IMG/VR virus record: IMGVR_UViG_3300009104_001210
Location: 152,423-216,422 of that record
Length of the DNA stretch: 64,000 nt
Direction: 5' to 3' (one strand)
Position numbers and translations under genes: made by a program. Shown here piece after piece: positions 1-45,015 of this stretch (position 1 is its first letter; each line of letters begins with the position of its first letter). A model generated the notes under the pieces. It had not been told where the DNA came from and searched no databases. It saw nothing but the letters and a program-made list of their open reading frames with translations.

Positions 1-167
1 ACACAACCGACCAAGATATAGAGGAAGCAGTATTAGAGGGTGCAAGAACATTTGAAGAAGTACAGAAGAAAACTAAAGTAGGAATAGGTAATCCAAAAGT
101 TCAAATGGATGTAGAACAATTACTTAGATTCTATGTAGAGAAATATTTTGGAGAAGATGCTTTATGA
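1..167 (+). CDS. 3' end of a protein with a BFD-like (2Fe-2S) domain, probably a NifU/IscU-type Fe-S scaffold (partial)
   Basis: Frame 3 reads TTDQDIEEAVLEGARTFEEVQKKTKVGIGNPKV..., resembling BFD-like C-terminal domains of NifU-type proteins; its stop overlaps the next start (ATGA). Confidence 0.6.
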   Translation, partial: TTDQDIEEAVLEGARTFEEVQKKTKVGIGNPKVQMDVEQLLRFYVEKYFGEDAL

Positions 168-490
168 TTACAGAAGCACAAGTTATAGAAAAGTTACGAG
201 GAGTTTATGATCCAGAGATTCCAATCAATCTATATGATTTGGGATTGATATATTCTATAGGTGTAGATGAGAATACAGTAACTATAGATATGTCATTAAC
301 TACACCACATTGTGGATTGAAGGATATGATTATAAATCAAGTAGTTATGGCAGTAGAAACAATAGAAGATGCAGAGTGTGATGTGAGATTAACATTTGAT
401 CCTCAATGGACACCAACTATGTTGAGACCAGAAGCAATTGAAGTGTTGGGTGAAAATCATCCGTTAGCACAAATGGCAATAGGAGTTTAA
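164..490 (+). CDS. DUF59/SufT (PaaD-like) metal-sulfur cluster assembly factor
   Basis: VYDPEIPINLYDLGLIY, MSLTTPHC and LTFDPQWTP motifs. Confidence 0.9.
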   Translation: MITEAQVIEKLRGVYDPEIPINLYDLGLIYSIGVDENTVTIDMSLTTPHCGLKDMIINQVVMAVETIEDAECDVRLTFDPQWTPTMLRPEAIEVLGENHPLAQMAIGV

Positions 491-491
491 A

Positions 492-575
492 ATGAGTGGT
501 TGGTTACAAATAATAGCTGCATTATCAATAGTTGTAGCACTTGGTTATTGGTTATTTTGGGGAGAGGATTTTTAA
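492..575 (+). CDS. small membrane protein (27 aa)
   Basis: AGGAG RBS; MSGWLQIIAALSIVVALGYWLFWGEDF. Confidence 0.5.
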   Translation: MSGWLQIIAALSIVVALGYWLFWGEDF

Positions 576-731
576 ATGAATGAATTTTTACATTTTATAA
601 AACATTTAATTGGTTTGTGTGGTGAAACTTCACATCCAAGTTTACTAATAAGTGGTGGAGCATTTCTTACCACAATAGGATTGTATTGGAAAAAATTAAT
701 AAGTTATATGAAAAATTTGGAGGGATTTTAA
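576..731 (+). CDS. small hypothetical membrane protein
   Basis: MNEFLHFIKHLIGLCGETSHPSLLISGGAFLTTIGLYW...; abuts both neighbours. Confidence 0.55.
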   Translation: MNEFLHFIKHLIGLCGETSHPSLLISGGAFLTTIGLYWKKLISYMKNLEGF

Positions 732-938
732 ATGGATATTAGAATAGAATATTGTGTTCAATGAAATTACAAACCAAGAGCTCGTAGTTTACGACAAGAA
801 TTAAGTGATACATTTGGTTATTGGGCTGAATTAAAACCTGGAGAAAGAGGAGCATTTGAAGTGTATGTAAATGGTAATCTAATTTTTTCAAAATTAAAGG
901 AAGATAGATTTCCAAATGAAGGAGAAATAGTATTATGA
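732..938 (+). CDS. SelW/SelT/SelH (Rdx family) selenoprotein with CxxU motif
   Basis: MDIRIEYCVQ-UGA(762-764)-NYKPRARSLRQEL...GAFEVYVNGNLIFSKLKEDRFPNEGEIVL; Rdx signature on both sides of the UGA; not in the ORF track. Confidence 0.9.
765..819 (+). promoter_or_regulatory. candidate bacterial-type SECIS element
   Basis: TCGTA-GTT-TACGA hairpin (782-794) with a G-starting apical loop 22 nt after the UGA; possible lower stem AACCAA(772-777)/TTGGTT(814-819). Confidence 0.45.
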
Positions 939-1027
939 ATCAAAAATTTGGTGATATGTTTGGGAAGTTCCTTATTCTATTTGGGATGTGGACTTTTATA
1001 GCATTTATGTTTGGAATAGGATACTAA
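935..1027 (+). CDS. small membrane protein
   Basis: ATGA-coupled to the selenoprotein; MNQKFGDMFGKFLILFGMWTFIAFMFGIGY. Confidence 0.45.
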   Translation: MNQKFGDMFGKFLILFGMWTFIAFMFGIGY

Positions 1028-1046
1028 AATATAAGGAGTTATTATA

Positions 1047-2054
1047 ATGAGTCATAAGTTAGAATATATTTGGCTGGATGGTGTAGAACCAACAGCGCAG
1101 TTAAGAAGTAAAACTAAAATAGTATCAAAGTTTGGTATAGAGGGTGGTGTAACAGCAACACAAGCACCAATATGGGGATTTGATGGTTCGTCAACACAAC
1201 AAGCAGAAGGTGGGAGTTCTGATTGTGTGTTGAAACCTGTAAGATTATATCGAAATCCATTGGAAGAAGGTACATTGGTATTATGTGAAGTATGGAATGT
1301 AGATGATACACCACATAAATCTAATACAAGACATGGTTTAGATAATACATTACAGAGTTTAGATCATGATCCAGAAGAGTGGGTTGGATTTGAGCAAGAG
1401 TATACATTATATGAAGGTGGAATACCTTATGGTTGGCCACCCGATTTAAGTGATCCATTACCACAAGGCGATTATTATTGTGGTAGAAATGCTGGAGAAC
1501 ATATAATGAAAGAACATACTGATGCTTGTATAGAAGCAGGTATTAGTATTTGTGGAACTAACGCAGAAGTAATGTTAGGACAATGGGAATATCAGATTGG
1601 TGCAGGTTCTTCATTAGAAATGAGTGATGATTTATGGGTTGCTCGTTGGTTAATGGAAAAGATTTGTGCTGAATATGATGTGGAAGTTGTTTTAGATCCA
1701 AAGCCAGTTAAGGGTGATTGGAATGGTGCAGGTTGTCATACTAATTTCTCTACTAAAGATATGAGAGGACATGGTGGAGATGAACTTATATTTAAGGCGT
1801 GTATGGATTTAGAGAAGGTACATAAAGAACATATGGCAGAATATGGTGAAGGAAACGAAAGACGACTTACGGGACTTCATGAGACTCAGGCTATAGATAC
1901 ATTTAGTTGGGGAGTTTCAGACAGAGGTGCTTCCATTCGTATTCCCTGGCAAGTAGATAAAGATGGTAAAGGATATCTTGAAGATAGAAGACCATCAGCG
2001 AATTGCGATCCATATAGAGTTTGTAAAAAGTTAATTGAGACAATTATTATATGA
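1047..2054 (+). CDS. glnII: glutamine synthetase type II
   Basis: LEYIWLDG, GFDGSST, GFEQEY, EVMLGQWEYQ, WNGAGCHTNFS, HET, RGASIRIP, YLEDRRP motifs. Confidence 0.95.
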   Translation: MSHKLEYIWLDGVEPTAQLRSKTKIVSKFGIEGGVTATQAPIWGFDGSSTQQAEGGSSDCVLKPVRLYRNPLEEGTLVLCEVWNVDDTPHKSNTRHGLDNTLQSLDHDPEEWVGFEQEYTLYEGGIPYGWPPDLSDPLPQGDYYCGRNAGEHIMKEHTDACIEAGISICGTNAEVMLGQWEYQIGAGSSLEMSDDLWVARWLMEKICAEYDVEVVLDPKPVKGDWNGAGCHTNFSTKDMRGHGGDELIFKACMDLEKVHKEHMAEYGEGNERRLTGLHETQAIDTFSWGVSDRGASIRIPWQVDKDGKGYLEDRRPSANCDPYRVCKKLIETIII

Positions 2055-4111: not shown

Positions 4112-4582
4112 ATGAGTTATAAAATAGAGAGTTATACAAGAGAAGAATTAGAGTTATTTCCGAATGATGAATATGGATATGTTAAACAGAGAGTATGGTC
4201 TACTGGACAACTTAGTACACTTGAATACTTTGATAGAAATTTTGTAAAAATTTATTTAATAAGAGATGAAAATTTAAAAATAATAGCCTTTTCTTGTGAA
4301 AAAATACCAAGATATGAAGGCTTTGATTTTGAATGGGGATACTCATATGTTGAACCAACATATAGAGGAACTCGATGTTACTTTAAATTATGTAAATATA
4401 AAAGAGATGAGGCTCGACAACAAGGTTTGATTGGTTATACAATATGTTTAAAATCTCAACCCGCTACTGTAAAGTGTGGTAAAATCCTTTGTGATATTAA
4501 AATAGATAATCCATTACATCTTGGAGAAACAGAATCATCTTTTGATAACGAAAATTTAGAATTTTGGGGAATGATGTTATGA
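4112..4582 (+). CDS. GNAT-family acetyltransferase-like protein
   Basis: YSYVEPTYRGT resembles GNAT motif A. Confidence 0.55.
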   Translation: MSYKIESYTREELELFPNDEYGYVKQRVWSTGQLSTLEYFDRNFVKIYLIRDENLKIIAFSCEKIPRYEGFDFEWGYSYVEPTYRGTRCYFKLCKYKRDEARQQGLIGYTICLKSQPATVKCGKILCDIKIDNPLHLGETESSFDNENLEFWGMML

Positions 4583-5844
4583 ATGTAGCAATAAAATATA
4601 TTTGGCAGCCAGATCCAGATATAGTTAAATTTGAAGAACTGTATCTAAAACAAGAAACAGATACATATAAAATAAAACTAACCGATTTACCAATTAAAAA
4701 TAGTAAAGAATTGACGAAACGTGAACTACAAACGATTGATTCTGATATAGTGAAACGTGGTTTTATTTTAAAACCAATAGGAATTTGGTCAGATCCTTTA
4801 GAAGATGATACTCCTGATAAAGCACATTATTTAGTATTATGTGAAGATGGTGTATCTAAAGACTCATACCGTGATAAGTTAAAAAAATTATTAGAAAAAA
4901 CAAATTTCTATAATCCCTGGGTTGGAATAGAACAAGAGTATTATCTTTTTCCAAATGAAGATACTACTTCCCCATCAGAACAAGAATTATTTAATATACA
5001 AACATCTGAAGGAGTATGTCAAACTGTTCAAAAACTTCTTGATAACTCAACTCGAAAAAATAATAGAAGATTACTTGAACACTTATGTGTTTATTCTAAA
5101 AACGAATTATCATCATTGGATACACAAGATGATATAGTTTTTGCTTGTGCTAAAATGGGTTTAAAAGTTAATAGGGTACAGGCAGTTAAAGAACAAGGTC
5201 CTGGACATTGGGAAGTACAGTTTGGTCCTACAGAACCATTACAAACTTTAGATGAAACAATGATTGGTCGTTATATTATATGGAAAATAGGTAATGAAGA
5301 ATTAACTGTTTCATTTGAACCAAAACCAAAAGGTTGGTCTGTAGAATATGATCTTTGGGCAGGTTCTGGATTACATTTTAATTATTCTAATGATAAAACA
5401 AGAGCAGAAAGTGTTGAAGATTATTTAGATATTAAAAAAGCTGAAGATAATCCATCATCAATAATTGAAATGGATAAAGAAGAGAGAATAAATCTTATTA
5501 AAAAAGCACCATATACTAAAGCATTATTAAAACAATTAGCTAAAAATCATAGAAAACACGTAACTGAATATGGTATAGGAAATGAAAAAAGACAAGATGG
5601 TGATCACGGAACTACTACTGGTAATGTATTTGTTTTATCAAAAGAAATAGATAATAAAAATGTTTCTGTTAGAATAGTAACTATGGGTTTGAATAAAAGA
5701 TTATTATCCGACGAAGATTATTATGGATTATATCTTGAAGATAGAAGACCAAGTGCAAATGCTAATCCATATAGAGTTGCTTTAAGATATTTCGAAACAG
5801 TTGCAGAAATGCAAAAGAATAATGAAGGTAAAAAAACTAAATAG
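4579..5844 (+). CDS. divergent glutamine synthetase II-like ligase
   Basis: KYIW, GIEQEYY, GPGHWEVQFG, GSGLHFNYS, LYLEDRRPSANANPY; start moved to ATG 4579 (ATGA overlap). Confidence 0.85.
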   Translation: MNVAIKYIWQPDPDIVKFEELYLKQETDTYKIKLTDLPIKNSKELTKRELQTIDSDIVKRGFILKPIGIWSDPLEDDTPDKAHYLVLCEDGVSKDSYRDKLKKLLEKTNFYNPWVGIEQEYYLFPNEDTTSPSEQELFNIQTSEGVCQTVQKLLDNSTRKNNRRLLEHLCVYSKNELSSLDTQDDIVFACAKMGLKVNRVQAVKEQGPGHWEVQFGPTEPLQTLDETMIGRYIIWKIGNEELTVSFEPKPKGWSVEYDLWAGSGLHFNYSNDKTRAESVEDYLDIKKAEDNPSSIIEMDKEERINLIKKAPYTKALLKQLAKNHRKHVTEYGIGNEKRQDGDHGTTTGNVFVLSKEIDNKNVSVRIVTMGLNKRLLSDEDYYGLYLEDRRPSANANPYRVALRYFETVAEMQKNNEGKKTK

Positions 5845-6490
5845 TTATAAAGAATTAAGTTCAACTGTAGCAGATATAGTTGAGGAACAGCTTGTAGAAA
5901 AAGTTTTTCAACAACTAGTCCTTCCTACAGGTAGTACACCAATCGGATTATATAAAGAACTTGCTAAAAGAAATTTAAATTGGTCTTATGTTAGAACATT
6001 TAATCTTGATGTTTATATTATGAATCCAAATCATTCACAAAGTTATCAAACATTTATGAAGGAAAATTTATTTAATAGAATTAATATCTATCCTGATAAT
6101 TGTCATTTCCCATTTAGACCTACTTTAGCATATGAAGATAAAATAAATTATTTTGGTGGAGTTGATTTGTGTATATTGGGTATAGGTAGTAATGGTCATA
6201 TAGCATTTAACGAACCTGGTTCTTCATTTAAGTCAAGAACAAGAGTAGTAGATTTAGACGAACAAACTATACAAGACAATTCAAGATTTTTTGATTCAGT
6301 AGATGATGTACCTAAACAAGCAATAACTATGGGAATAGGAACTATAATGGAATCAAAGAAAATAATATTAATGGCAAGTGGAGATCATAAAAAAGACATT
6401 TTAGAAAAAGCATTAAATGGTAAAGTAACTGAAGATGTACCAGCATCAGTATTACAAACACATAAAAATGTAGAAGTGTATTATCATTGA
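5822..6490 (+). CDS. nagB: glucosamine-6-phosphate deaminase
   Basis: LPTGSTP, TFNLD, LGIGSNGHIAFNEPG, SRTR, AITMGIGTI. Confidence 0.92.
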   Translation: MKVKKLNSYKELSSTVADIVEEQLVEKVFQQLVLPTGSTPIGLYKELAKRNLNWSYVRTFNLDVYIMNPNHSQSYQTFMKENLFNRINIYPDNCHFPFRPTLAYEDKINYFGGVDLCILGIGSNGHIAFNEPGSSFKSRTRVVDLDEQTIQDNSRFFDSVDDVPKQAITMGIGTIMESKKIILMASGDHKKDILEKALNGKVTEDVPASVLQTHKNVEVYYH

Positions 6491-7764: not shown

Positions 7765-9204
7765 GTGTGTGGCATAGCAGGTATTTATAGTCATAGGTCT
7801 GTAGCACCAGAATTGTATGAGTGTATAGTTCATTTACAACATAGGGGACAAGATGCCGCAGGGATGATGACATATGATGAACGTATGCACAAACATAAAG
7901 GATTGGGATTAGCTAGAGACGTATTTACAAAAAATAATATATCTTTACTTAAAGGTAATGTTGGTATTTCACATAATAGATATCCTACACATGGAGAGTT
8001 TGGTCATGGTGAGATACAACCCGTATGGACTTCCGTACCATATGGAATAGCAATAGCACATAATGGACAGATAACAAACTATGATGAATTAGTAGAAGAA
8101 GTTACACAAAAGGAAAAGAGATATCTTAATACCACAAGTGATACTGAAGTTTTATTACATATATTAGCAAATGAATTAGATAAGAATGGAATACCAAAAA
8201 CTTCAGAAGAGTTTTTTAATCATTTATGTGAGGCAGTTAGTACTATATTTACAAAAGTTAAAGGGGCTTATTCTGTTACAGGTATTATTGTTGGAAAAGG
8301 ATTAATTGTTTTTAGAGATCCACGAGGTATTAGACCATTAGTTAAAGGTGAAAGAGATGATAACGGTAAAAAGGAGTATATCTTTTCATCAGAAAATACT
8401 ATGTTTTATTCATTAGGTTATGAACCAAAGGGTAATGTATTACCTGGAGAACTTATTTACATAGATGAAAGTGGTAAGTATTTTAGCAAACGATTAGTTA
8501 AGGAAGAATTTAATCCTTGTATATTTGAGTATGTATATTTTTCACGACCAGATGCAGTACTGAATGATGTAGGTGTGTATCGTTCAAGATTGAGAATGGG
8601 TCAGAATTTAGCATATGCATGGATGAAGAAGTATCCATATATAGTACCTGATATAGTTATACCTGCACCGAGTACGGCAAATACCGCCGCATTATCATTT
8701 GCTCATGAAATAGATGTTAGATATTCAGAAGGATTGTATAAGAATCCGTTTGTTGGTAGAACATTTATTATGCCAGGACAAGAAGAACGTAAAAGTTCTG
8801 TTAAACATAAACTCGTACCACAAGATACAGAGATACGAGATAAGAAAGTATTAATAGTAGATGATAGCATTGTTCGTGGTAATACAAGTAAAGAGATAGT
8901 AAGAATGGTAAAAGATTTTGGAGCAAAAGAAGTGTATTTTGTTAGTGCTTGTCCACCAATAAAACACCCTTGTTATTATGGTGTTGATATGCCAACTAAA
9001 GAGGAATTAATTGCTGGAATTAATAAAATAGATACTATTAAAAAAGATTTAGGAGTTGATATTTTACTATATCAAGAGATAGATGATTTAGTTGAAGCAG
9101 TAACACGAAGAGGTGATCATCATATAGAGAATCCATGTATGGCTTGTCTTGATGGACACTATGTAGTTAATGGAAGAAAAGTTCATGAATTGGTACTTAA
9201 TTAA
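7765..9204 (+). CDS. purF: amidophosphoribosyltransferase
   Basis: N-terminal CGIAG, QHRGQD, HNGQI, PCIFEYVYF, VDDSIVRGNTS, terminal CMAC. Confidence 0.96.
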   Translation: MCGIAGIYSHRSVAPELYECIVHLQHRGQDAAGMMTYDERMHKHKGLGLARDVFTKNNISLLKGNVGISHNRYPTHGEFGHGEIQPVWTSVPYGIAIAHNGQITNYDELVEEVTQKEKRYLNTTSDTEVLLHILANELDKNGIPKTSEEFFNHLCEAVSTIFTKVKGAYSVTGIIVGKGLIVFRDPRGIRPLVKGERDDNGKKEYIFSSENTMFYSLGYEPKGNVLPGELIYIDESGKYFSKRLVKEEFNPCIFEYVYFSRPDAVLNDVGVYRSRLRMGQNLAYAWMKKYPYIVPDIVIPAPSTANTAALSFAHEIDVRYSEGLYKNPFVGRTFIMPGQEERKSSVKHKLVPQDTEIRDKKVLIVDDSIVRGNTSKEIVRMVKDFGAKEVYFVSACPPIKHPCYYGVDMPTKEELIAGINKIDTIKKDLGVDILLYQEIDDLVEAVTRRGDHHIENPCMACLDGHYVVNGRKVHELVLN

Positions 9205-9704
9205 TGATTAATAAGATAATGATTGTAGCGCACCCTGATGATGAAGCACTATTTGGTGGCGCTGAATTATTATCACACCCAAAAGAATATAAAGTTGTAG
9301 TAGTAGATGAATATCACAATGATGTTAGACAAAAAGAGTTTAAGGATTCCATGCAATTTATAGGAATTACAGATTTTGAACATTGGACAGGTTATAAAGG
9401 TGGAGAAGATTATCATAGAGAAAAACTTATTTATGAGTTATTGAGAGTATTGAGAGAAAAAAAATGGGAAAAGATTGTAACTCATAATAGAGCAGGTGAA
9501 TATGGTCACCCAAGACATAGAGCATTGCATGATATATTAAATCATTTAAGACCTGAAATACTATGGCAGTTTGATAAAGGTAAAGAAAGATTACCACAAG
9601 ATTTATTAATTAAGAAAAGAGATTTATTAAAAGTATATGGAAGCCAAAGAGATGTTTTAGATTGGTTTAGTCCCTGGTACGAGAAAATAACGAAGGTAAA
9701 TTGA
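9204..9704 (+). CDS. PIG-L/LmbE family deacetylase
   Basis: AHPDDE and GEYGHPRH motifs. Confidence 0.85.
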   Translation: MINKIMIVAHPDDEALFGGAELLSHPKEYKVVVVDEYHNDVRQKEFKDSMQFIGITDFEHWTGYKGGEDYHREKLIYELLRVLREKKWEKIVTHNRAGEYGHPRHRALHDILNHLRPEILWQFDKGKERLPQDLLIKKRDLLKVYGSQRDVLDWFSPWYEKITKVN

Positions 9705-10741
9705 TGAGAAGAGCATTAGCATATGATGACATAAATATTACACCTAAATATTCAGATGTGGAACATAGAGACGACATAAATATTACTACAAGATTTACTA
9801 AGAAAACTTTATTAGATATACCAATTGTATCTTCACCTATGGATACTATTACTGGATTTGATATGGCTTTTGCTATGATGGTGTTGGGTGGAGTTGGTGT
9901 TGTACATAGATTTAATACTATTGAAGAACAATCATTGATAATGAATCAGTTACATACTGAAAAGTATGATCATTGTGAATTACCATTATCTGCAGCTATT
10001 GGAGTTACAGGGGATTATTTAGAAAGGGCACAAGAATTAATTAAGAACGGATGTAATGTTCTACTTATAGATGTAGCGCATGGACATCATAAATTAGTAG
10101 GAGAAGCAATTGAAGAGGTCAAAACCAAGTTATCAGGAGTTGAAATCATTGCGGGATCAGTTGCGACAGGAGAAGCGTGTGAATACTTATGTGAAAAAGG
10201 AGCGGACTCGATTAGAGTCGGAATTGGAAATGGAAGTTTATGTGAAACGAGAATTAGAACGGGTGTCGGAATCCCTCAAGTGTCTGCTCTCATTGATTGC
10301 GTCGCCGTTGCTGATAGGTTTGATGTTCCTATTATTGGTGATGGTGGGATCCGTAATGTTGGTGATGTGTGTAAAGGACTTGCTTGTGGGGCTGACTCGA
10401 TTATGTTGGGCTCCCTGTTATCAGGTACTAAAGAAACTCCAGGCACGATTGAAAAAATAGGCCAATGGCCGAATGAAATGTTACATAAAAAATATAGAGG
10501 TTCAGCATCATTGGACTCTAAAAAATCAAGAGGGGATAATAAAAATGTCGAAGGTAATCACAAAGTTATACCATACAAAGGGAAGGTCAAAAGAATTATA
10601 CAAGATATACAAGAGGGAATTCGTAGTTCTTTCAGCTATGTTGGTGCTAACAATTTTCCTGAGTTTTATTCTAAAGTAGAGTTAATAGAAGTTACAAGAG
10701 CAGGAAATATTGAAGGTATGCCACACCTTCTTAATACTTAA
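9701..10741 (+). CDS. IMP dehydrogenase/GMP reductase family, CBS-less (GMP reductase more likely)
   Basis: SSPMDT, IDVAHGH, VGIGNGSLCET, YRGSAS...KNVEG (GuaC-like flap). Confidence 0.85.
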   Translation: MMRRALAYDDINITPKYSDVEHRDDINITTRFTKKTLLDIPIVSSPMDTITGFDMAFAMMVLGGVGVVHRFNTIEEQSLIMNQLHTEKYDHCELPLSAAIGVTGDYLERAQELIKNGCNVLLIDVAHGHHKLVGEAIEEVKTKLSGVEIIAGSVATGEACEYLCEKGADSIRVGIGNGSLCETRIRTGVGIPQVSALIDCVAVADRFDVPIIGDGGIRNVGDVCKGLACGADSIMLGSLLSGTKETPGTIEKIGQWPNEMLHKKYRGSASLDSKKSRGDNKNVEGNHKVIPYKGKVKRIIQDIQEGIRSSFSYVGANNFPEFYSKVELIEVTRAGNIEGMPHLLNT

Positions 10742-10747
10742 TAATAT

Positions 10748-11182
10748 GGGGCTGAATGGTTTCGACAGATGCTATTTGATAATATAGTGCAACGGAGTTT
10801 GAGTAAGACTTGCTATAAAAGACTCACAAACCCAAAATGGCGATAAATCGCTACAAGGGTTGGAAATTGATTGGCATTTAGCCAATACCGAACAGATGTT
10901 TGACACTTATGTTGAACCTGCAAGGGCTTCCCAACCAACTTACGCATACGCATAAGTTACTGAGTTACCTAACACTCGGTCATAAAATGAGTTAGGTGGT
11001 AGGATGGTTGGTATATGTCTTTGAGTAGGAATTAGACGATAAAGAAACCTATCAGTTAAACTCATCTGAGTAAATGAGGTATGGTGGGTTGTTAGTTGAC
11101 TACCGATTTGGAAACTAACTAAGTTGTAAATGACTATTTATTAAAAGTAGACTGGACGCGGGTTCGAATCCCGCCAGCTCCA
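10748..11182 (+). ncRNA. ssrA: tmRNA
   Basis: 5' GGGGCTGAATGGTTTCGAC; 3' T-arm GCGGGTTCGAATCCCGC plus CAGCTCCA (G3:U70); internal tag ORF ending YAYA-TAA; CCA not encoded. Confidence 0.95.
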
Positions 11183-11202
11183 CTAAAATTGAGGAGAATA
11201 TT

Positions 11203-14652: not shown

Positions 14653-14726
14653 GTGCTGGTGCCGGAGTGGTCTAACGGGGTGGGTTGCAAACCCATTATT
14701 CACAGGTTCGAATCCTGTTCAGCACT
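14653..14726 (+). tRNA. tRNA-Cys(GCA)
   Basis: GTGCTGG/TCAGCAC acceptor; loop TT-GCA-AA; U73. Confidence 0.9.
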
Positions 14727-14741
14727 CATAACTAAGGAGAA

Positions 14742-19442: not shown

Positions 19443-20151
19443 AGTCGCAAATAGTTTATGGATAGGTAAGAAATTATTACCACAAAATATAATATCTATA
19501 AAATCTTTTTTACAAAATGGATTTGATTATAACTTATATGTTTATGATGAAGTAAAAGATATTCCATCAGGAGTAAATGTTCTTGATGGTAATGATATAT
19601 TACCTGATTCTGCTATATGGTACTACGGCAAAGGATTTAATAAAGGATCACCTTCAGGTTTTTCAAATGAATTTAGATTTACTTTCCTATATGATATTGG
19701 TGGATTATGGACTGATACTGATATAGTTTTATTGAAAGAATTCAATTTAGAACAACCTTTAATTTTTATAAGTCAAGAAAATCCTGATCAAAGTATAATG
19801 GCAACTACTTCTTTAATATATTCAAAACATCCAAAATTAGAAATTTTTAAAGATGCTTTAAATGAAATAACTTTTAGAAATAAAGAAAGAATTAAACATG
19901 GAGAAACTGGTCCAGATTTACTTGATTATTTAGTAAAGAAATATCAATTAGAAGAATTTGTTTTAGGTTATAATGCGTTTTGTTCAATAGGTTGGCATGA
20001 AATAGATAAGTTAATTAATGGAACTAAACTTTCAGAAGAAGCTATAGGATTACATTTGTTTAATGCTAGATGGGAAGCTGATGGAATTGATATTGATAAT
20101 TATAGTACATCTAAATCTATTCTTACTGAATTGAAGAAAAAGTATTTATGA
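19423..20151 (+). CDS. GT32/capsular-synthesis-type glycosyltransferase
   Basis: FSNEFRF...GGLWTDTD (DxD); HGETGP. Confidence 0.75.
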   Translation: MAKERDKVANSLWIGKKLLPQNIISIKSFLQNGFDYNLYVYDEVKDIPSGVNVLDGNDILPDSAIWYYGKGFNKGSPSGFSNEFRFTFLYDIGGLWTDTDIVLLKEFNLEQPLIFISQENPDQSIMATTSLIYSKHPKLEIFKDALNEITFRNKERIKHGETGPDLLDYLVKKYQLEEFVLGYNAFCSIGWHEIDKLINGTKLSEEAIGLHLFNARWEADGIDIDNYSTSKSILTELKKKYL

Positions 20152-21101
20152 AATTAAGTAGAGAGAAAAGAAGAGAAGTAGCATTATATCAAAGTGTTTA
20201 TTTTTATGATAGGAATACAAGATTTAATACTGATATTCATCCAGATGATTTTTTTCATACAACTAAATTTAGATCTTATTTTGATGATGATAATAGAATT
20301 AACGGTATTGTTCCTATAAATAAAATAGAGCAATCTATTTTTTTTAAAGATAAATATTATTATCCTAAAACTTATATTAAAAATCCAAAGTTAGAAGGAA
20401 TTTGGTTTATTAAACCAACGGATGGGTCTTTGGGTAATGATATTGAAATAACTGATGATTTAAGTTCAGTAAAAAATAATAAAAAAGCTATTTATCAACA
20501 ATCAATTGATAATCCTTTATTACATAAAAATAAAAAAATAGATTTTAGAACTTTTTTATTATTACAAACATTTGAGGGAAAATTTAGAGCATATTTTTAT
20601 AAAGATTCTATGTTAAGATGGACAACACTTGATTATAAAAAAGATGATTTTACATTGGAACGCCAAATAACAAATTATCTTGCAAAAAGAGATGGTAAAT
20701 TTTTTGGTAATACTATGGTTAGGGCATATTCTAAACACACATATCATTATTATAAAGAGTTACATGAAACTATGAAAAATATTATTGTAGATATTTCAAA
20801 AAGTATTTTTGATAGAGTGAATAATAAAACACAAAGAAATATATTTCAATTGTTTGGTGTAGATTTTATTCCTGATGAAGATAAGAATGTTTGGTTATTA
20901 GAAATGAATGGTAATCCAGGTCCTTATTTACATTTAGATAGACCATTAACAAAACAATTAAAGAATTGGACTTTAGATATAGTTGAAGATATATTTGATT
21001 TAACAGTATATCCAATGTATTATGGAAGAAAAAAAAAGTTAGGTGAATTTGAATTAGTATTTGAAAAAGATTTACAATTTGAAAAATGGATAGAAGTATG
21101 A
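20148..21101 (+). CDS. tubulin-tyrosine-ligase (TTL/TTLL) family ATP-grasp ligase
   Basis: WFIKP..GSLG..I; QQSIDNPLL..KKIDFR; FQLFGVDF...WLLEMNGNP. Confidence 0.85.
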   Translation: MKLSREKRREVALYQSVYFYDRNTRFNTDIHPDDFFHTTKFRSYFDDDNRINGIVPINKIEQSIFFKDKYYYPKTYIKNPKLEGIWFIKPTDGSLGNDIEITDDLSSVKNNKKAIYQQSIDNPLLHKNKKIDFRTFLLLQTFEGKFRAYFYKDSMLRWTTLDYKKDDFTLERQITNYLAKRDGKFFGNTMVRAYSKHTYHYYKELHETMKNIIVDISKSIFDRVNNKTQRNIFQLFGVDFIPDEDKNVWLLEMNGNPGPYLHLDRPLTKQLKNWTLDIVEDIFDLTVYPMYYGRKKKLGEFELVFEKDLQFEKWIEV

Positions 21102-21597: not shown

Positions 21598-22932
21598 ATG
21601 ACATGGATTAATACTAAAACGGTATTCACTTGGAATACTAAGGACAAAAAGTACGAAGAAACTCTTAATGAGGGTTATGATTATACTGGTCCTACTGCTG
21701 AATGTTTTGGTTGTTTTATAGCAGGAACAGCTGTACCTACCTCAGATGTAACATATGAGTTGATAGAAAATTTAAAAGTTGGTGATACAGTACTTACAGT
21801 TAATACAAATACAAAACCATTCACATTAGAAGAAAATAAAATACTTGAAATAGCTACACCTGTTCATGAGAATATGGTTGAGATAAAATTTGATGCTAAA
21901 ATGTTCAAAGATGGTATGCCAACATATAAGTATAGTTTAGATGAAGCAAAACCATCTCCCTCTAAGATAGCAGTTGGTCCGAAGAAATTTCCAGAGTTCT
22001 GGCTTGAAGTTTCAGAACTAGATAAACTTTCTGATGATGAGAAAGAAGCAGAGTTTAATAAATATATTGACGCCACTTGGAAGGATTTAGTAAATACAAA
22101 TACATTTGATCACCCATATTTGGTAAAAAATAAAGGTTGGTGTTCATATAAACCAAGTTTAACTAAAGAAACATATAGTATGGATGTTGGTCAGCTTGAA
22201 GTTGGTGATATTTGTTATGTGCTCAATCCTGTAAGGGGAAGAAGTCCTTTTACTGAGGTAAAGATTGTTAGTATTGAAGAAAAAAATGAAGAAACCCAAA
22301 CATATAACTTAGCTAGTGTTGAAAATAATCATAATTATTTAGCTAATGGTGTATTAGTTCACAATAAAGAAAGTTTGGGTGGTGAAGATGTAACTATTTT
22401 AAGTAGTTCTGTTGACCACGCTGATGGAGAAGTACATGCTTCTATGTCAATTGATGATAAAGTTTTAGCAGCTAGTATTTCAGGTTTACCTGATACAGAT
22501 GTAGCATCAGAATTTTTATTGTGGGAATATACGGGCAGTGATATTGCTTCTCAAATTACATTAGTTACTGCTTCAGTTGATTATATTATGTCTTCTTCTC
22601 GTAACAATTGGTTAAATATTGATTGTAAAAATGGTAGATCTGATACTTTTAGAATTACACCTGGACACCCATTATTAGTTAAGAGTGAAAGTTATGGTGA
22701 GGGATATGGGCTTCCTGGTTCTACAGGATCAGCAGCACTTACAGGATCTGTTTGGTATTTTGATTATGCAGGAGACATTAATACAAATTATAAACTTTTA
22801 AGTTCTTCATTGGAAGAGGTAGACATTGAATCAATTACACCATATAGTGCGTCTGAATCGTCTAGCTTTTTTAGATTTGATATAGAACCACAGGATACAT
22901 ATTTCGTAGATCACATATTAATACATAATTAG
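21598..22932 (+). CDS. tandem Hint-domain (intein-like) autoprocessing protein
   Basis: 38-aa leader; Hint 1 CFIAGT...TFDHP...VLVHN; KE linker; Hint 2 SLGGED...TPGHP...ILIHN-stop. Confidence 0.85.
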   Translation: MTWINTKTVFTWNTKDKKYEETLNEGYDYTGPTAECFGCFIAGTAVPTSDVTYELIENLKVGDTVLTVNTNTKPFTLEENKILEIATPVHENMVEIKFDAKMFKDGMPTYKYSLDEAKPSPSKIAVGPKKFPEFWLEVSELDKLSDDEKEAEFNKYIDATWKDLVNTNTFDHPYLVKNKGWCSYKPSLTKETYSMDVGQLEVGDICYVLNPVRGRSPFTEVKIVSIEEKNEETQTYNLASVENNHNYLANGVLVHNKESLGGEDVTILSSSVDHADGEVHASMSIDDKVLAASISGLPDTDVASEFLLWEYTGSDIASQITLVTASVDYIMSSSRNNWLNIDCKNGRSDTFRITPGHPLLVKSESYGEGYGLPGSTGSAALTGSVWYFDYAGDINTNYKLLSSSLEEVDIESITPYSASESSSFFRFDIEPQDTYFVDHILIHN

Positions 22933-24579: not shown

Positions 24580-25528
24580 AGATATTTTATATGAAGATCA
24601 AGCGTGGAAAACTGTTAAGTTTTTATTAGATGTAAAAAAAATATCTAATGAGGTTGTAGATATGCACAATATAGAATCTATAAAGCAATTAAATGTTTCA
24701 AGTGATGATATATGTTTTGCTAGATTTGGTCATCATTTTGATGATAAGATAGCAACTAATAAAGCATATGATGTATTAACTCAAAAATTTAATAAAATAT
24801 ATCCTTCAAAAGACGCATATTATTATTATGATGATAAATTAAAGCAATATGAATTTATGTTAGAAAATGATATACCTTGTTTGAAAACATATTATGTAGG
24901 TAGTAAAGAAGAGATAGAAAAATTAAATATAAAATTTCCTATAGTTACTAAAAAAACTTGGGGGGCTGGAACTGAACAAGTTAATAAGTGGGATGATTAT
25001 GAATCTATTGTTGATAATAAAGATACTCGAAGTTGGACAGGGGGATCTATATTTCCATGTTTAGTTCAAGAATATAAAGATGTAGATTATGATATTAGAG
25101 TTAGAATTTTAAACTCTAAAGTTTTCTTTACTAAAAGAATGCACGAATTTAAAACAAAAAATAAAGATAATTTTCCATATGGTACAAAAGAGATTCTTAA
25201 AAAAGATAGAATAAAATATCATTTACCACCATATGAAGTTCCTGTAGCATTACCAATAAATGATTTAGCAGAAGTAGAAGATATTATACCTATAGTAGAA
25301 AAATTACATAAGATTCAAAATGAAAAATTGAATAGTAATTTTGTGGTGTGGGATATTCTTAGAACAAATGAAGGAATAAAAATTCTTGAATTTAGTCATG
25401 TTACAGTATATAAAAGTTTTCCACAAATTTATTATGATATAGAATATAAAGAAGCAAATAAATTAACAATAAAAAATCGTGAACATTTTTTTTATTTGTA
25501 TAACGAAATATTAAAAGGATTAATATGA
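24560..25528 (+). CDS. RimK-like ATP-grasp ligase
   Basis: DKLKQYEFM, PIVTKKTWGAG, LVQEY...YDIRV, VWDIL...ILEFS. Confidence 0.75.
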   Translation: MKFYLHKDILYEDQAWKTVKFLLDVKKISNEVVDMHNIESIKQLNVSSDDICFARFGHHFDDKIATNKAYDVLTQKFNKIYPSKDAYYYYDDKLKQYEFMLENDIPCLKTYYVGSKEEIEKLNIKFPIVTKKTWGAGTEQVNKWDDYESIVDNKDTRSWTGGSIFPCLVQEYKDVDYDIRVRILNSKVFFTKRMHEFKTKNKDNFPYGTKEILKKDRIKYHLPPYEVPVALPINDLAEVEDIIPIVEKLHKIQNEKLNSNFVVWDILRTNEGIKILEFSHVTVYKSFPQIYYDIEYKEANKLTIKNREHFFYLYNEILKGLI

Positions 25529-27090
25529 AGAAAGTTATTATAGTTGGTGGTGGATTTGCAGGTTACTTAACAGCGTTGTTTTTAAATAAAAAATTTCCTA
25601 AATTAAAAATTGATATAATAAAATCATCAGATAAAGAACAAATTTCTGCTGGAGAACAAACAGGCAAAGAACAACTACAATTGTTTTTTGAATCATTAGG
25701 AATTGAAGAAACTGAATGGTTTAGTAGAACAAAATCTTTTTTAAAAATAGGTAATTCTTTTGTTGGGTGGGGAAACCGTGAAAATTTTGATCCTCGAGTT
25801 GGTGGACCAGATGTAGTTAATCATAGTTTTGTAATGGAAAATAAATTATTACCTTTACTTAGGAATGGTGGTGGTATGAAATCCGTAAAGGATTCTATGA
25901 AATATAATGATAAGTTACATACTGAATTATATCAAAATAGTTTTTTAGAAACACCCATAGATAATACGGATGATTATATAGATAGTTTTAAAAAACACTT
26001 TAAAAATAGTTTTTTTAATAGAAAGAATAATAGAGCCATAGCTCATATGCATGATTGGTTAGAGATAGGTAAATTTATAGAAACTAAGTTTGATGATAAT
26101 GTTAAAATAATTACTGATCATATAACTGATGTGGTTGTAGATAAAAAAAATAATACTATAGAATATCTTGTTAATAAAGATAAAGAAAAGATTAAAGCAG
26201 ATCACTACGTAGATTGTACAGGTATTAGTAGAATTTTGATTTCTAAACTTAGTAAAGTTGTAGATATTAGTGATGAATATCCTGTAAATAGTGCCGTATT
26301 TGGTCCAGTAGAATATATAGATAGAACTAAAGAGATGGTGCCAACCTTATATACTACTGCTTTTAAAAATGGTTATTCATTTAAAACACCATTACAACAT
26401 AGGATAGGAACAGGATATGTCTATTCAGATAAGTATATTAGTAAAGATGAAGCAATAGATGAGATAAATGATTATTGGGATGGTAGATTTAAGTCAGATC
26501 AAGTTAATCATTTAAAATGGACTCCATCTTATGTAGTTAAACCTTTTCAGAAAAATTGTAGCGCTGTAGGATTAGCAGGACAATTTGATTGTCCAATGGA
26601 ATCTACAGTATTTACTCAGATATCAACTGCTCTTCAACAATTAGGAAATTATTTAAATAGAGATAATAAATTATTATACATGAATCGTTCTGATATAAGA
26701 GATGAAGATATGTTAAATTATTGTAATACTTGGACTGAATATACTTTTCATAATACAAGACATTTTAAACAAATGATGTTTTATACTACAAATAGAGATG
26801 ATAGCGAATTTTGGAAGAATATTAAAACACTTAATTATTCTGATATTTTTTATAAAAAATTAAGTTTCTTTTTAGACAATTCATTTGATTATATAATAGA
26901 AAATAGAAATAAGTTTCCTGATTATACTCCACCAACAAATTTTAATATTAATGAAGATAGATTTTGGAGAGTATATCAAAAAGGATTTAAAGGATATTTT
27001 GATTATATGGGAATAAGGGGTGTAGGACATAGTATGATATTAGATGTTCATAATTGGTTAATGATTCTTGCGTATAAAAAATACATTTAA
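25525..27090 (+). CDS. tryptophan-halogenase (PrnA)-like flavoprotein
   Basis: IVGGGFAG, KIGNSFVGW, YVDCTG, PLQHRIGTGYVYS, PMEST. Confidence 0.8.
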   Translation: MKKVIIVGGGFAGYLTALFLNKKFPKLKIDIIKSSDKEQISAGEQTGKEQLQLFFESLGIEETEWFSRTKSFLKIGNSFVGWGNRENFDPRVGGPDVVNHSFVMENKLLPLLRNGGGMKSVKDSMKYNDKLHTELYQNSFLETPIDNTDDYIDSFKKHFKNSFFNRKNNRAIAHMHDWLEIGKFIETKFDDNVKIITDHITDVVVDKKNNTIEYLVNKDKEKIKADHYVDCTGISRILISKLSKVVDISDEYPVNSAVFGPVEYIDRTKEMVPTLYTTAFKNGYSFKTPLQHRIGTGYVYSDKYISKDEAIDEINDYWDGRFKSDQVNHLKWTPSYVVKPFQKNCSAVGLAGQFDCPMESTVFTQISTALQQLGNYLNRDNKLLYMNRSDIRDEDMLNYCNTWTEYTFHNTRHFKQMMFYTTNRDDSEFWKNIKTLNYSDIFYKKLSFFLDNSFDYIIENRNKFPDYTPPTNFNINEDRFWRVYQKGFKGYFDYMGIRGVGHSMILDVHNWLMILAYKKYI

Positions 27091-32115: not shown

Positions 32116-34908
32116 ATGAAAAACAAACGTAATCTAATCTCATTGGTAATAACATTTCTAATGCCTATGTTCATTTATGGACAAAGTGTTAGTGGTACGG
32201 TTGCTGATGAGGCAGGGAATCCTTTGGCTGGAGCTAATGTAGTTGTACAAGGAACTGATTTGGGTGCCGCTTCTTTGGAAGATGGTACTTATTCGATTAA
32301 AATCGGAGAAGGTTCACATACACTAATAGCTTCTGTTATCGGGTATGAATCATCTTCACAAACAGTAGATGTTAGTGGAGATATTAGTCTCGACTTTAGC
32401 TTAGCGGTTTCCGCAGTCGAGATGTCAGCATTGGAAGTTTTGGCTTCCCGTGCAGGCGAAAAAACACCTGTTGCTTATACTACGGTAGAAAAAGCAGATA
32501 TGGAATTCCGTCTTGGTAGTCAAGACCTTCCAATGGCGCTTAATCTAACACCATCAGTATATGCTACGCAACAAGGTGGTGGTGCGGGTGATGCTCGTAT
32601 CAATGTTCGAGGTTTTAATCAACGGAATGTAGCAGTAATGATTAATGGAGTACCACAAAATGATATGGAAAACGGTTGGGTTTATTGGTCCAATTGGGAT
32701 GGTGTAGCAGATGCTGCACATTCTATCCAGATGCAACGTGGTTTAAGTGCTGTTAATTTAGCTACACCTTCCATTGGTGGAACTATGAACATAATTACAG
32801 ACCCTACCTCTCACATAAAGGGTGGTAAGGTAAAACAAGAAGTTGGTGCTGGTGATTTTCTTAAAACTACAGTAAACTATAATACTGGCTTGATAGGTGA
32901 TAAATTTGCCTTGAGTGGTACAGTAGTACGTAAAACTGGTGGTGGAATCATTGACAAAACGTGGACAGATGCTTGGGCATATTACTTTGGTGCAAGTTAC
33001 GCACTAAATGCTGATAACCGATTTGAATTATACGCAATCGGTGCGCCACAGCGACACGCACACAATCTATATAAACAGAATATTGGTGCATATGATGCTG
33101 ATTTTGCTGCAAGTATAGATGGATATGATACTGAAGCACTTGGTGAAGATGGTAAGTTCAAGGATGTTGGACGTACATTTAATCAAAATTGGTCTCCAGT
33201 AGACCCATCATATACAGGTAAACAATACTATTATATGTATGGTGCTAAAACAGTAGCAAGACACGATCCCAACTTTATTAACGAAAGAGAAAATTTCTTT
33301 CACAAGCCTTTAGTAAACCTAAATCATTTTCTAACTATTAATGACAAAACAATGTTAAGTTCAGTATTGTATTGGAGTGGTGGTTCAGGTGGTGGTACAG
33401 GTACTTATGGTAGGATTCCTACTATGGATGCTGATGGTAATCTTGGTGATGATGACTATAAATTTTATTATGGTCGTTCTCCCTGGACACGTGATTGGAA
33501 TGCTCTTATCGCTATGAATAGTGGTGATTCTGATACAGTTTATGTAGACAAAAGAGTAATCACACGCACACATGGTATTGATAATAATCAATCTGTAGGT
33601 ATTTTGAGAAATAGCATTAATCGTCAGAATACATATGGCCTTATTTCTAAACTTAATTATGATGTAAGTGATGAACTTCAATTACAATTAGGTATAGATT
33701 GGAGAACTGCTGGTATAGAACACGCACGTGAAGTACGTGATCTAATGGGTGGTGATTATTATGTGGATTATGCTGATGATAATGTACCTGATGGTAAAAG
33801 AGTTGGATTAGGTGATATAATCGCTTATCATAACTCAACCACAGTTGATTGGTTAGGTGGATTCTTACAAGGAGCTTATGCTTCAGGTCCACTTTCAGCC
33901 TATGGTATGGTAGGATTATCACAGATTGGATATTCATATCAAGACCATTTTACTGTAGCCGATGAGAAGATTGTAGCAGATCCTATTTCCACTTTACAAT
34001 GGAAAGGTGGGGCAATGTATGATGTTACTGATAACGTTTCAGTTTTTGGTAATTTTGGTATTGTTGAAAAGCCACCAATTATGGATAATGTAATCTATTA
34101 TGATGGTACGGTTGCTTCAGATCCTGCAAATGAAAGATTTGTAAGTTCAGAAGCTGGTGCTCACTACGCGACGGATAAAGTAGCAGTTAAAGTGTCTGCA
34201 TATAATACAGATTGGAAAGACAGAAACCTTACCAAATCTGTAACAAGCGGACAAGGTTCAAGCGGTGATACTGATGTGATTTTCCTTTCGGGGATAAATC
34301 AGAATCATAAAGGTGTTGAAGTTGAAGCTTCTACACAAGTACTTGATGTACTTAACTTACAAGCTATAGTAAGTCTTGGTACTTGGAAGTTTGTAGGTGA
34401 TGCAGCAGGTAACTATCAAGAAGATGAGTTTAACGAAGAAGGTCAAGTTATCGGACAGACAACTACACCTTATTCTTACGCACTTGATGGTTTGTTTGTT
34501 GGTGATATGCCTCAAACATCTTACGCACTTGTTGGAACGCTTACACCAATTAAAGGTCTAAAAATGCAAGCAGTATACAAACAGTATGATAATAATTATG
34601 CTGATTGGAGTCCTGACGCTCGTGAGTATGATGGCTCAGATGCTGGTGCAGATAGAGAACAAGTATGGATGGCACCTGGATATTCCAGAGTTGACTTACA
34701 TGCTTCATATGCTCTACCTTCAATTGGTGGTATGGATTTTACCGCATTTGCTCATGTATTTAATGCAACAGATGCAACATACATTCAAGATGCAGTAGAT
34801 CATAGTCAGTATAATAGCTACGGAGATAAAACTCACGCAGCACACAACGCTGAAGTTTTTCTTGGAACACCAAGATACTTTAACGCAGGAATTTCTGTAA
34901 ATTTCTAA
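32116..34908 (+). CDS. TonB-dependent outer-membrane receptor
   Basis: Signal peptide; CarboxypepD_reg-like N-domain; plug (INVRGF...VMINGVPQND; IQMQRG); beta-barrel ending in Phe (GISVNF). Confidence 0.92.
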   Translation: MKNKRNLISLVITFLMPMFIYGQSVSGTVADEAGNPLAGANVVVQGTDLGAASLEDGTYSIKIGEGSHTLIASVIGYESSSQTVDVSGDISLDFSLAVSAVEMSALEVLASRAGEKTPVAYTTVEKADMEFRLGSQDLPMALNLTPSVYATQQGGGAGDARINVRGFNQRNVAVMINGVPQNDMENGWVYWSNWDGVADAAHSIQMQRGLSAVNLATPSIGGTMNIITDPTSHIKGGKVKQEVGAGDFLKTTVNYNTGLIGDKFALSGTVVRKTGGGIIDKTWTDAWAYYFGASYALNADNRFELYAIGAPQRHAHNLYKQNIGAYDADFAASIDGYDTEALGEDGKFKDVGRTFNQNWSPVDPSYTGKQYYYMYGAKTVARHDPNFINERENFFHKPLVNLNHFLTINDKTMLSSVLYWSGGSGGGTGTYGRIPTMDADGNLGDDDYKFYYGRSPWTRDWNALIAMNSGDSDTVYVDKRVITRTHGIDNNQSVGILRNSINRQNTYGLISKLNYDVSDELQLQLGIDWRTAGIEHAREVRDLMGGDYYVDYADDNVPDGKRVGLGDIIAYHNSTTVDWLGGFLQGAYASGPLSAYGMVGLSQIGYSYQDHFTVADEKIVADPISTLQWKGGAMYDVTDNVSVFGNFGIVEKPPIMDNVIYYDGTVASDPANERFVSSEAGAHYATDKVAVKVSAYNTDWKDRNLTKSVTSGQGSSGDTDVIFLSGINQNHKGVEVEASTQVLDVLNLQAIVSLGTWKFVGDAAGNYQEDEFNEEGQVIGQTTTPYSYALDGLFVGDMPQTSYALVGTLTPIKGLKMQAVYKQYDNNYADWSPDAREYDGSDAGADREQVWMAPGYSRVDLHASYALPSIGGMDFTAFAHVFNATDATYIQDAVDHSQYNSYGDKTHAAHNAEVFLGTPRYFNAGISVNF

Positions 34909-43812: not shown

Positions 43813-45015
43813 TTGGGATTTAACATAGAAGGTTTTTTCGATATTTCTACAGATTTTCCTTATGATGAGGAAAAACAATCGTTTATTGATCACATGAACT
43901 CATTAAAAGAAATGACAGTTCAAGAACAAACACTTTATAAAAAATGGAAAGAGTGGAATTATGATCCTTATGGTATGACACAAAAGGGTACTAAGATAGA
44001 TTTAGCTAAAAAACAATTGTGGATGCCAAAAGATATTAATGATTTAGAGGGAACTTTTGAAGAGATAAAAAGTATAATACCAATAGCAATACCTGTAAAA
44101 CAAGGTGATGCTAAAGCAAATGATGCTTGGTCAGTTACACGAAGATTAATTCACACAATGGAATTCACAGCCAATCCTGGCAGAAATCTTAAATTTTATG
44201 TTAAAGATAAAACAACAAACAAAATACTTGGATTAATATGTTTAGGTAGTGATGTTATTGCATTAAGAGTTAGAGATAAATGGATTGGTTGGTCAAAAGA
44301 AAATAGATTAGATGGTGGATTATTAAATCATACTGCTATTGCTACTACAATTTGTTCTACACAACCATTCGGATATAATTTCTTAGGTGGTAAGTTGATT
44401 GCTACTATGGTAAATTCTAAAGTAGTTCGTGATGAATGGGAAAAAGTTTATAATCAAAAATTAGTTGGATTTACAACAACATCACTTTATGGTATACATT
44501 CGATGTATAATGGAATTCCACATTGGAAGGGATTAGGAGAATCTACAGGAAGAATTGGTTTAAAACCTGATGATGAATATTATGATAAGTGGCATGAATG
44601 GATTAAAGAAAATAGAGCAGAAGAATATAAAAAGAAAATAGAATCTAAAGGTGGAAAATCAGGACCTGTAACAGGAATCAAACAAAGAATTTTAAGTATT
44701 ATATTAAATGAAATTGGTATATCACAAACTAAATACCAACATGGATTTAAACGTGGTGTATTTTTTTCAGAGTTATATGATAATACAAGACCATTTCTAA
44801 GAGGTGAGATAAAAGAAGATGAATTGGTTTTGAAAAAAAGATTAGAAAATGATGTAGATGGTATAACAAAATGGTGGTGTAAAAAGGGATTAAAAAGATA
44901 TTTTAAGTTATACGAACAAAATAGATTAAAACCTGAAATGTTATTCTATGCAGATATGATAGGTAAATCTTGGGAAGAAGCAAAAGAAAAATACTTAGGA
45001 GAAGTTGGTAGATGA
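43813..45015 (+). CDS. DUF4338/Druantia DruA-like protein
   Basis: PGRNLKFYV, RDKWIGW, QPFGYNFLGGKL, TTTSLYG. Confidence 0.75.
   Translation: MGFNIEGFFDISTDFPYDEEKQSFIDHMNSLKEMTVQEQTLYKKWKEWNYDPYGMTQKGTKIDLAKKQLWMPKDINDLEGTFEEIKSIIPIAIPVKQGDAKANDAWSVTRRLIHTMEFTANPGRNLKFYVKDKTTNKILGLICLGSDVIALRVRDKWIGWSKENRLDGGLLNHTAIATTICSTQPFGYNFLGGKLIATMVNSKVVRDEWEKVYNQKLVGFTTTSLYGIHSMYNGIPHWKGLGESTGRIGLKPDDEYYDKWHEWIKENRAEEYKKKIESKGGKSGPVTGIKQRILSIILNEIGISQTKYQHGFKRGVFFSELYDNTRPFLRGEIKEDELVLKKRLENDVDGITKWWCKKGLKRYFKLYEQNRLKPEMLFYADMIGKSWEEAKEKYLGEVGR

Follow-up and report, generated by a model that had tools for sequence, protein, structure and literature searches.

SelW-like selenoproteins and viral use of selenocysteine

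SelW-like proteins of the Rdx family form the most abundant selenoprotein family of the ocean, with published counts of 48 genes in the Sargasso Sea, 427 Sec against 56 Cys forms in GOS, and 11.3% of all selenoprotein genes in a later GOS survey (PMC1088965, PMC2398784, PMC9402790). These sequences were attributed to bacteria because of their bacterial type of SECIS, a stem-loop immediately downstream of the UGA with a small apical loop containing G (PMC1088965), and the later survey reported that families other than RNR II, plastocyanin and Cu-Zn SOD have few or no viral sequences (PMC9402790). The SECIS of Escherichia coli fdhF, which is decoded in a SelB-dependent manner, likewise appears to be a hairpin inside the coding sequence shortly after the UGA, with G and U exposed in the apical loop.

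Selenoproteins are also known from eukaryotic viruses, such as the poxvirus glutathione peroxidase homologues (reviewed in PMC6769590 and PMC8310308), which rely on the selenocysteine insertion machinery of the host but belong to a different protein family and use eukaryotic 3'-UTR SECIS elements. In huge wastewater phages tRNA-Sec genes have been annotated, hinting that phages interact with Sec decoding, although that study reported tRNAs only and no selenoprotein gene (PMC10747093). We found no report of a bacteriophage selenoprotein gene in the literature, and a 2026 review of prokaryotic selenoproteomes does not mention phages or viruses.

Here we describe a SelW-like gene carried by a large marine phage, in which an in-frame UGA is very probably read as selenocysteine with the help of a conserved RNA hairpin. 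The domain, the N-terminal CxxU motif, the size (about 70-80 aa), the hairpin position and the small G-containing loop are shared with the SelW-like genes of the marine surveys, and the copies in bacterial genomes (L012-L024) align with it without gaps over the SECIS. What differs is that this copy lies on a phage genome and that its stem is shorter and A/U-rich. Compared to fdhF, the loop G seems to lie about one codon further from the UGA, and the stem is 5-6 bp with no bulged U. The protein family and the decoding mechanism are thus known, while the phage setting is new as far as we can tell.

A SelW-like gene skipped by gene callers

The window, i.e. the whole stretch of 64,000 nucleotides that was analysed, corresponds to the last 64 kb (positions 152,423 to 216,422) of the 216,422-bp IMG/VR record IMGVR_UViG_3300009104_001210. 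A sequence-only reading had proposed that it contains a SelW/Rdx selenoprotein gene missed by ORF calling, with a CVQU redox motif and a small hairpin 22 nt downstream of the UGA, and this observation was confirmed. Translation gives ten residues ending in C-V-Q, then TGA, then 57 residues and a TGA stop, which amounts to 68 residues if the first TGA is decoded (Table 1). The 57-residue piece following the TGA scores 52.6 bits against the Pfam Rdx profile (cut-off 22.6), starting from profile position 11 of 74, and also matches TIGR02174 CXXU_selWTH (52.8 bits against a cut-off of 34.2) and, from position 10, the Campylobacter SelT/W/H (seleno)protein model. The ten upstream residues plus the TGA therefore fill exactly the missing N-terminal positions, which carry the CxxC/CxxU motif. 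A profile of the pieces also finds the solved Rdx-fold proteins, so that a thioredoxin-like fold is predicted from sequence similarity only. Gene calls on four independent contigs leave this stretch empty.

Table 1. Features of the SelW-like locus and its surroundings (window coordinates unless stated otherwise)
Position	Strand	Feature	Observation
164-490	+	DUF59/SufT-like Fe-S assembly protein	PF01883, TIGR02945; last gene of a NifS-like, NifU, SufT cassette whose first two genes lie just upstream of the window
492-731	+	Two tiny hydrophobic ORFs (27 and 51 aa)	No family match for the 51-aa ORF; the ORF preceding the SelW-like gene stops at 729-731
719-724	+	Shine-Dalgarno sequence GGAGGG	7 nt upstream of the ATG
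732-761	+	N-terminal ten codons with the first Cys of the CxxU motif	Peptide conserved through synonymous changes in relatives (AGA/CGT, ATA/ATT, TGT/TGC)
762-764	+	In-frame UGA, predicted selenocysteine codon (residue 11)	TGA in relatives; TGC or TGT in Cys-form homologues
765-935	+	Remaining 57 codons of the Rdx/SelW-like domain	PF10262 (E 5.5e-14), TIGR02174, NF041051; PDB relatives 2LJK, 3DEX and 2FA8
764-772 with 782-790		Alternative hairpin starting at the last base of the UGA	Overlaps the SECIS stem; not supported by covariation
781-795	+	Bacterial-type SECIS hairpin	Arms 782-786 and 790-794, loop G787-U788-U789; outer pair 781/795 is a C-C mismatch here but C-G in most relatives
936-938	+	True stop codon, TGA	Overlaps the ATG (935-937) of the next small ORF
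1047-2054, 4564-5844, 5801-6490, 7765-9204, 9701-10741		Block of metabolic genes	GlnII-type glutamine synthetase, a second glutamine-synthetase-like protein, 6-phosphogluconolactonase-like protein, amidophosphoribosyltransferase (purF), IMPDH/GMP-reductase family protein
10748-11185	+	tmRNA	Full-length Rfam match (77.5 bits, E about 2e-28)
14653-14727	+	tRNA-Cys (GCA)	In a five-tRNA cluster (Glu, Tyr, Ala, Cys, Thr)
20148-21101, 21598-22932, 25525-27090		Tubulin-tyrosine-ligase-like ATP-grasp protein, protein with Hint/intein-splicing and AXH-like matches, tryptophan-halogenase-like protein	
32116-34908	+	930-aa protein with CarboxypepD_reg and TonB-receptor Plug domains at its N-terminus	54.8 bits to SusC/RagA against a cut-off of 368
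43813-45015	+	Druantia DruA family match	PF14236, E 2e-28
L043 (contig just upstream of the window) 8117-10327		Fe-S cassette, together with window 164-490	Aminotran_5 and NifU_N
L046 (77%-identical relative) 2-1099		SufBD gene	In the place of the cassette

Conservation of the UGA codon

A protein word search returned six relatives with 68-100% identity (P0001-P0006), all of which show W at the critical position, however their DNA revealed that each W is a TGA translated with code 4 on short contigs; the 100% identical entry even runs through the real stop. Pattern searches that do not include the Sec position provided 13 further IMG/VR viral loci, 14 bacterial genome loci from Myxococcota, Chloroflexota, Alphaproteobacteria, Bacillota and others, and 254 metagenomic relatives, of which the best 80 were fetched. 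Wherever the locus includes the aligned codon it is TGA, viz. in 23 of 23 distinct sequences and in 80 of 80 metagenome loci, giving 103 relatives in total. Within the window's own clade pairwise dS is 0.3-1.7 with dN/dS of 0.12-0.35, and the ten codons upstream of the TGA change synonymously while keeping the peptide.

Genuine Cys forms of the protein also exist. Among the 150 best of 1065 representative clusters, 16 have CxxC, 26 have CxxW, which was TGA read as Trp in every case checked at the DNA level, and 57 are short N-terminally truncated calls, as expected for mis-annotated Sec forms. Four Cys forms examined at the DNA level (L126-L129) carry TGC or TGT at the aligned codon, and this is the classical Sec/Cys pair.

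A covarying hairpin downstream of the UGA

The hairpin lies with exactly 22 nt between the UGA and the loop G, as the sequence-only reading had stated. On its own it is no better than chance, with an MFE of -3.9 kcal/mol and a z of -0.17, and 78 of 200 shuffles fold as well; it is only the comparative evidence that makes it convincing. In an ungapped alignment of 23 distinct Sec forms the five inner pairs are formed in 22-23 of 23 sequences, each pair showing two to four pair types, with 36 cells changed on both sides against 10.4 +/- 3.0 in column shuffles, a value reached by 0 of 500 shuffles, and every slid register scores far lower. RNAalifold independently returned the same helix, with compensatory changes at four of the five pairs. 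These changes use synonymous codon choices (Arg CGA/AGA, Leu UUA/UUG/CUC), so they act at the RNA level. Of the 80 metagenome loci, 77 have all five pairs and 77 have a GUU loop, while four Cys-form homologues used as controls pair at only 3, 4, 4 and 3 of 5 positions in the same register, and only one of these keeps a GU loop.

A longer alternative hairpin is the MFE fold in several relatives. Its outer five pairs are mostly kept, but its inner pairs fail in 9-17 of 23 sequences with little covariation, and as it also conflicts with the covarying helix it was rejected as the SECIS. No Rfam SECIS family matches the region, even at E up to 10, although bacterial SECIS elements are poorly represented there.

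Phage origin, host and selenocysteine machinery

The contig was also recovered as a 202-kb scaffold and as shorter contigs from other samples. All long ORFs of the window are on one strand, GC is about 30%, and there is a tRNA cluster, a tmRNA and a baseplate wedge protein with 43-50% identity to those of Microcystis phage Mel-JY01 and Flavobacterium phage 'immuto'. Other Rdx-carrying contigs hold baseplate, cobS-like, UvsX-like, SSB and methyltransferase genes. The metagenome loci have a median GC of 32%, and in the 20 longest checked all but one have every large ORF co-directional with the Rdx gene. The predicted selenoprotein gene is therefore spread through a group of large marine myoviruses at 44-80% protein identity, although a tblastn search of the post-UGA piece against 50,697 deposited phage genome records found no match. 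One bacterial hit, L016 (LUQU01000041.1), a 4.6-kb contig of a 'SAR86 cluster bacterium' MAG, carries the TGA-Rdx gene next to the same CbbQ-like AAA ATPase and SNase genes as the viral contigs and is probably phage DNA binned with the MAG, so it was rejected as a clue to the host.

ARAGORN and Rfam searches found no tRNA-Sec in the window, in the tRNA cluster at relaxed thresholds, or in the 10 kb upstream, and there is no tRNA with a UCA anticodon in the cluster. None of the ORFs of 277 aa or more in the window, nor the genes called upstream, is SelA-, SelB- or SelD-like, and E. coli SelD used as a probe against IMG/VR found nothing, although such a search finds only close relatives. As the examined part covers 74 of the 216 kb of the contig, the dependence on host SelA/SelB/tRNA-Sec suggested by the sequence-only reading is an inference rather than a result.

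The clues to the host are weak and no host was identified. Baseplate and purF relatives scatter over Microcystis, Flavobacterium, Acinetobacter and other phages. A TonB-receptor-like gene in the window's most GC-rich stretch (36%), which resembles SusC/RagA only at its N-terminus and far below the cut-off, may be a host-derived outer-membrane receptor. Together with the baseplate relatives it hints, weakly, at a Gram-negative and possibly Bacteroidota host, whereas a 2006 survey found no Sec decoding in Bacteroidetes or Cyanobacteria (PMC1794560), a tension that is unresolved. According to a 2026 preprint, Pelagibacter genomes lack selC, whereas Actinomarina genomes all carry Sec machinery (10.64898/2026.04.03.716425).

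Genomic context and possible role

Directly upstream of the locus lies a phage-encoded Fe-S cluster assembly cassette composed of a NifS/IscS-like class-V aminotransferase (404 aa), a NifU-like scaffold (227 aa) and the DUF59/SufT-like protein; the two tiny ORFs follow, then the SelW-like gene and then the GlnII-type glutamine synthetase. In the closest relative with enough flanking DNA, L046, the gene follows a SufBD protein, however the more distant Rdx-carrying phages lack this neighbourhood.

We consider it likely that the locus is an intact, expressed-type gene for a 68-residue SelW-like selenoprotein. In the proposed mechanism, when the ribosome reaches the UGA during infection, SelB-GTP-Sec-tRNA(Sec), inferred to be that of the host, binds the hairpin and inserts selenocysteine instead of terminating, although no experiment shows selenium in the protein. 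The product would carry a Cys8-x-x-Sec11 redox centre at the start of a predicted thioredoxin-like domain and act as a thiol/selenol oxidoreductase, which in this phage clade probably serves the adjacent Fe-S cluster assembly genes or general redox balance during infection; this role is inferred from adjacency only. The repeated adjacency offers a lead to the still unknown function of bacterial SelW-like proteins. A phage gene of this kind would add selenocysteine recoding to the list of host functions that phages exploit, would attribute part of the ocean's most abundant selenoprotein family to viruses, and could provide a marker for host prediction, because a host must decode Sec for the gene to be useful.

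A more speculative reading, which we regard as doubtful, is that a large share of the low-GC marine SelW-like genes is carried by phages rather than bacteria, and that in the window's clade the protein is a dedicated redox partner of phage-encoded Fe-S cluster assembly. The NifS-like enzyme might then also act as a selenocysteine lyase that feeds selenium to the host Sec pathway, and Sec dependence would be a hidden determinant of which hosts these phages can exploit fully.

Alternative explanations

Considering whether the UGA is simply a lesion, TGA is one substitution away from either Cys codon and gene callers treat the site as a stop. Its retention at the same codon across phages and several bacterial phyla, the purifying selection at dS up to about 1.6, the conserved upstream decapeptide and the covarying hairpin that follows effectively refute a pseudogene, and the relatives are not copies of one recent sequence, as 45 distinct 63-nt regions were found. 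A changed genetic code is equally improbable, even though database gene callers translated short contigs of this family with TGA as W. With the standard code, 72 non-overlapping long ORFs cover 88% of the window, 22 of them end in TGA, 12 of these in ATGA overlaps, TGG makes up 1.5% of codons, and treating TGA as sense does not improve coverage. One of the W-containing entries, P0001, runs through the gene's real stop into the next gene, the aligned residue in true homologues is Cys and not Trp, and a scan of uncovered gaps and same-frame upstream TGAs revealed no other candidate read-through gene in the window. The claim of the sequence-only reading that recoding is site-specific is therefore supported.

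It is also possible, though unlikely, that the UGA is passed without selenocysteine, either by a near-cognate tRNA inserting Cys or Trp at low level in a host without Sec machinery, or with only a truncated or re-initiated product being made. The lack of any Sec machinery found in the examined part of the phage, the lack of an assigned host and the weakness of the hairpin in this copy are compatible with this. However, the hairpin has the features of a bacterial SECIS (PMC1088965) and covaries only in TGA forms, which points to selection for SelB binding, the domain cannot fold from the 25-residue internal ORF, and the same gene with the same hairpin occurs in bacterial genomes. Finally, the family is known from bacteria and the window holds many metabolic genes (GlnII, purF, IMPDH-like, 6PGL), which might indicate a mis-classified cellular contig, but the baseplate wedge protein, the one-strand gene layout, the tRNA cluster plus tmRNA and the phage genes on other Rdx-carrying contigs make this very unlikely.

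Other features of the window

The phage appears to encode its own tmRNA, which was not called by ARAGORN and whose aligned tag region does not look like a usual ...ALAA tag. Besides the metabolic block, the window contains genes for a tubulin-tyrosine-ligase-like ATP-grasp protein, a protein with Hint/intein-splicing and AXH-like matches, a tryptophan-halogenase-like protein and a protein matching the Druantia DruA family.
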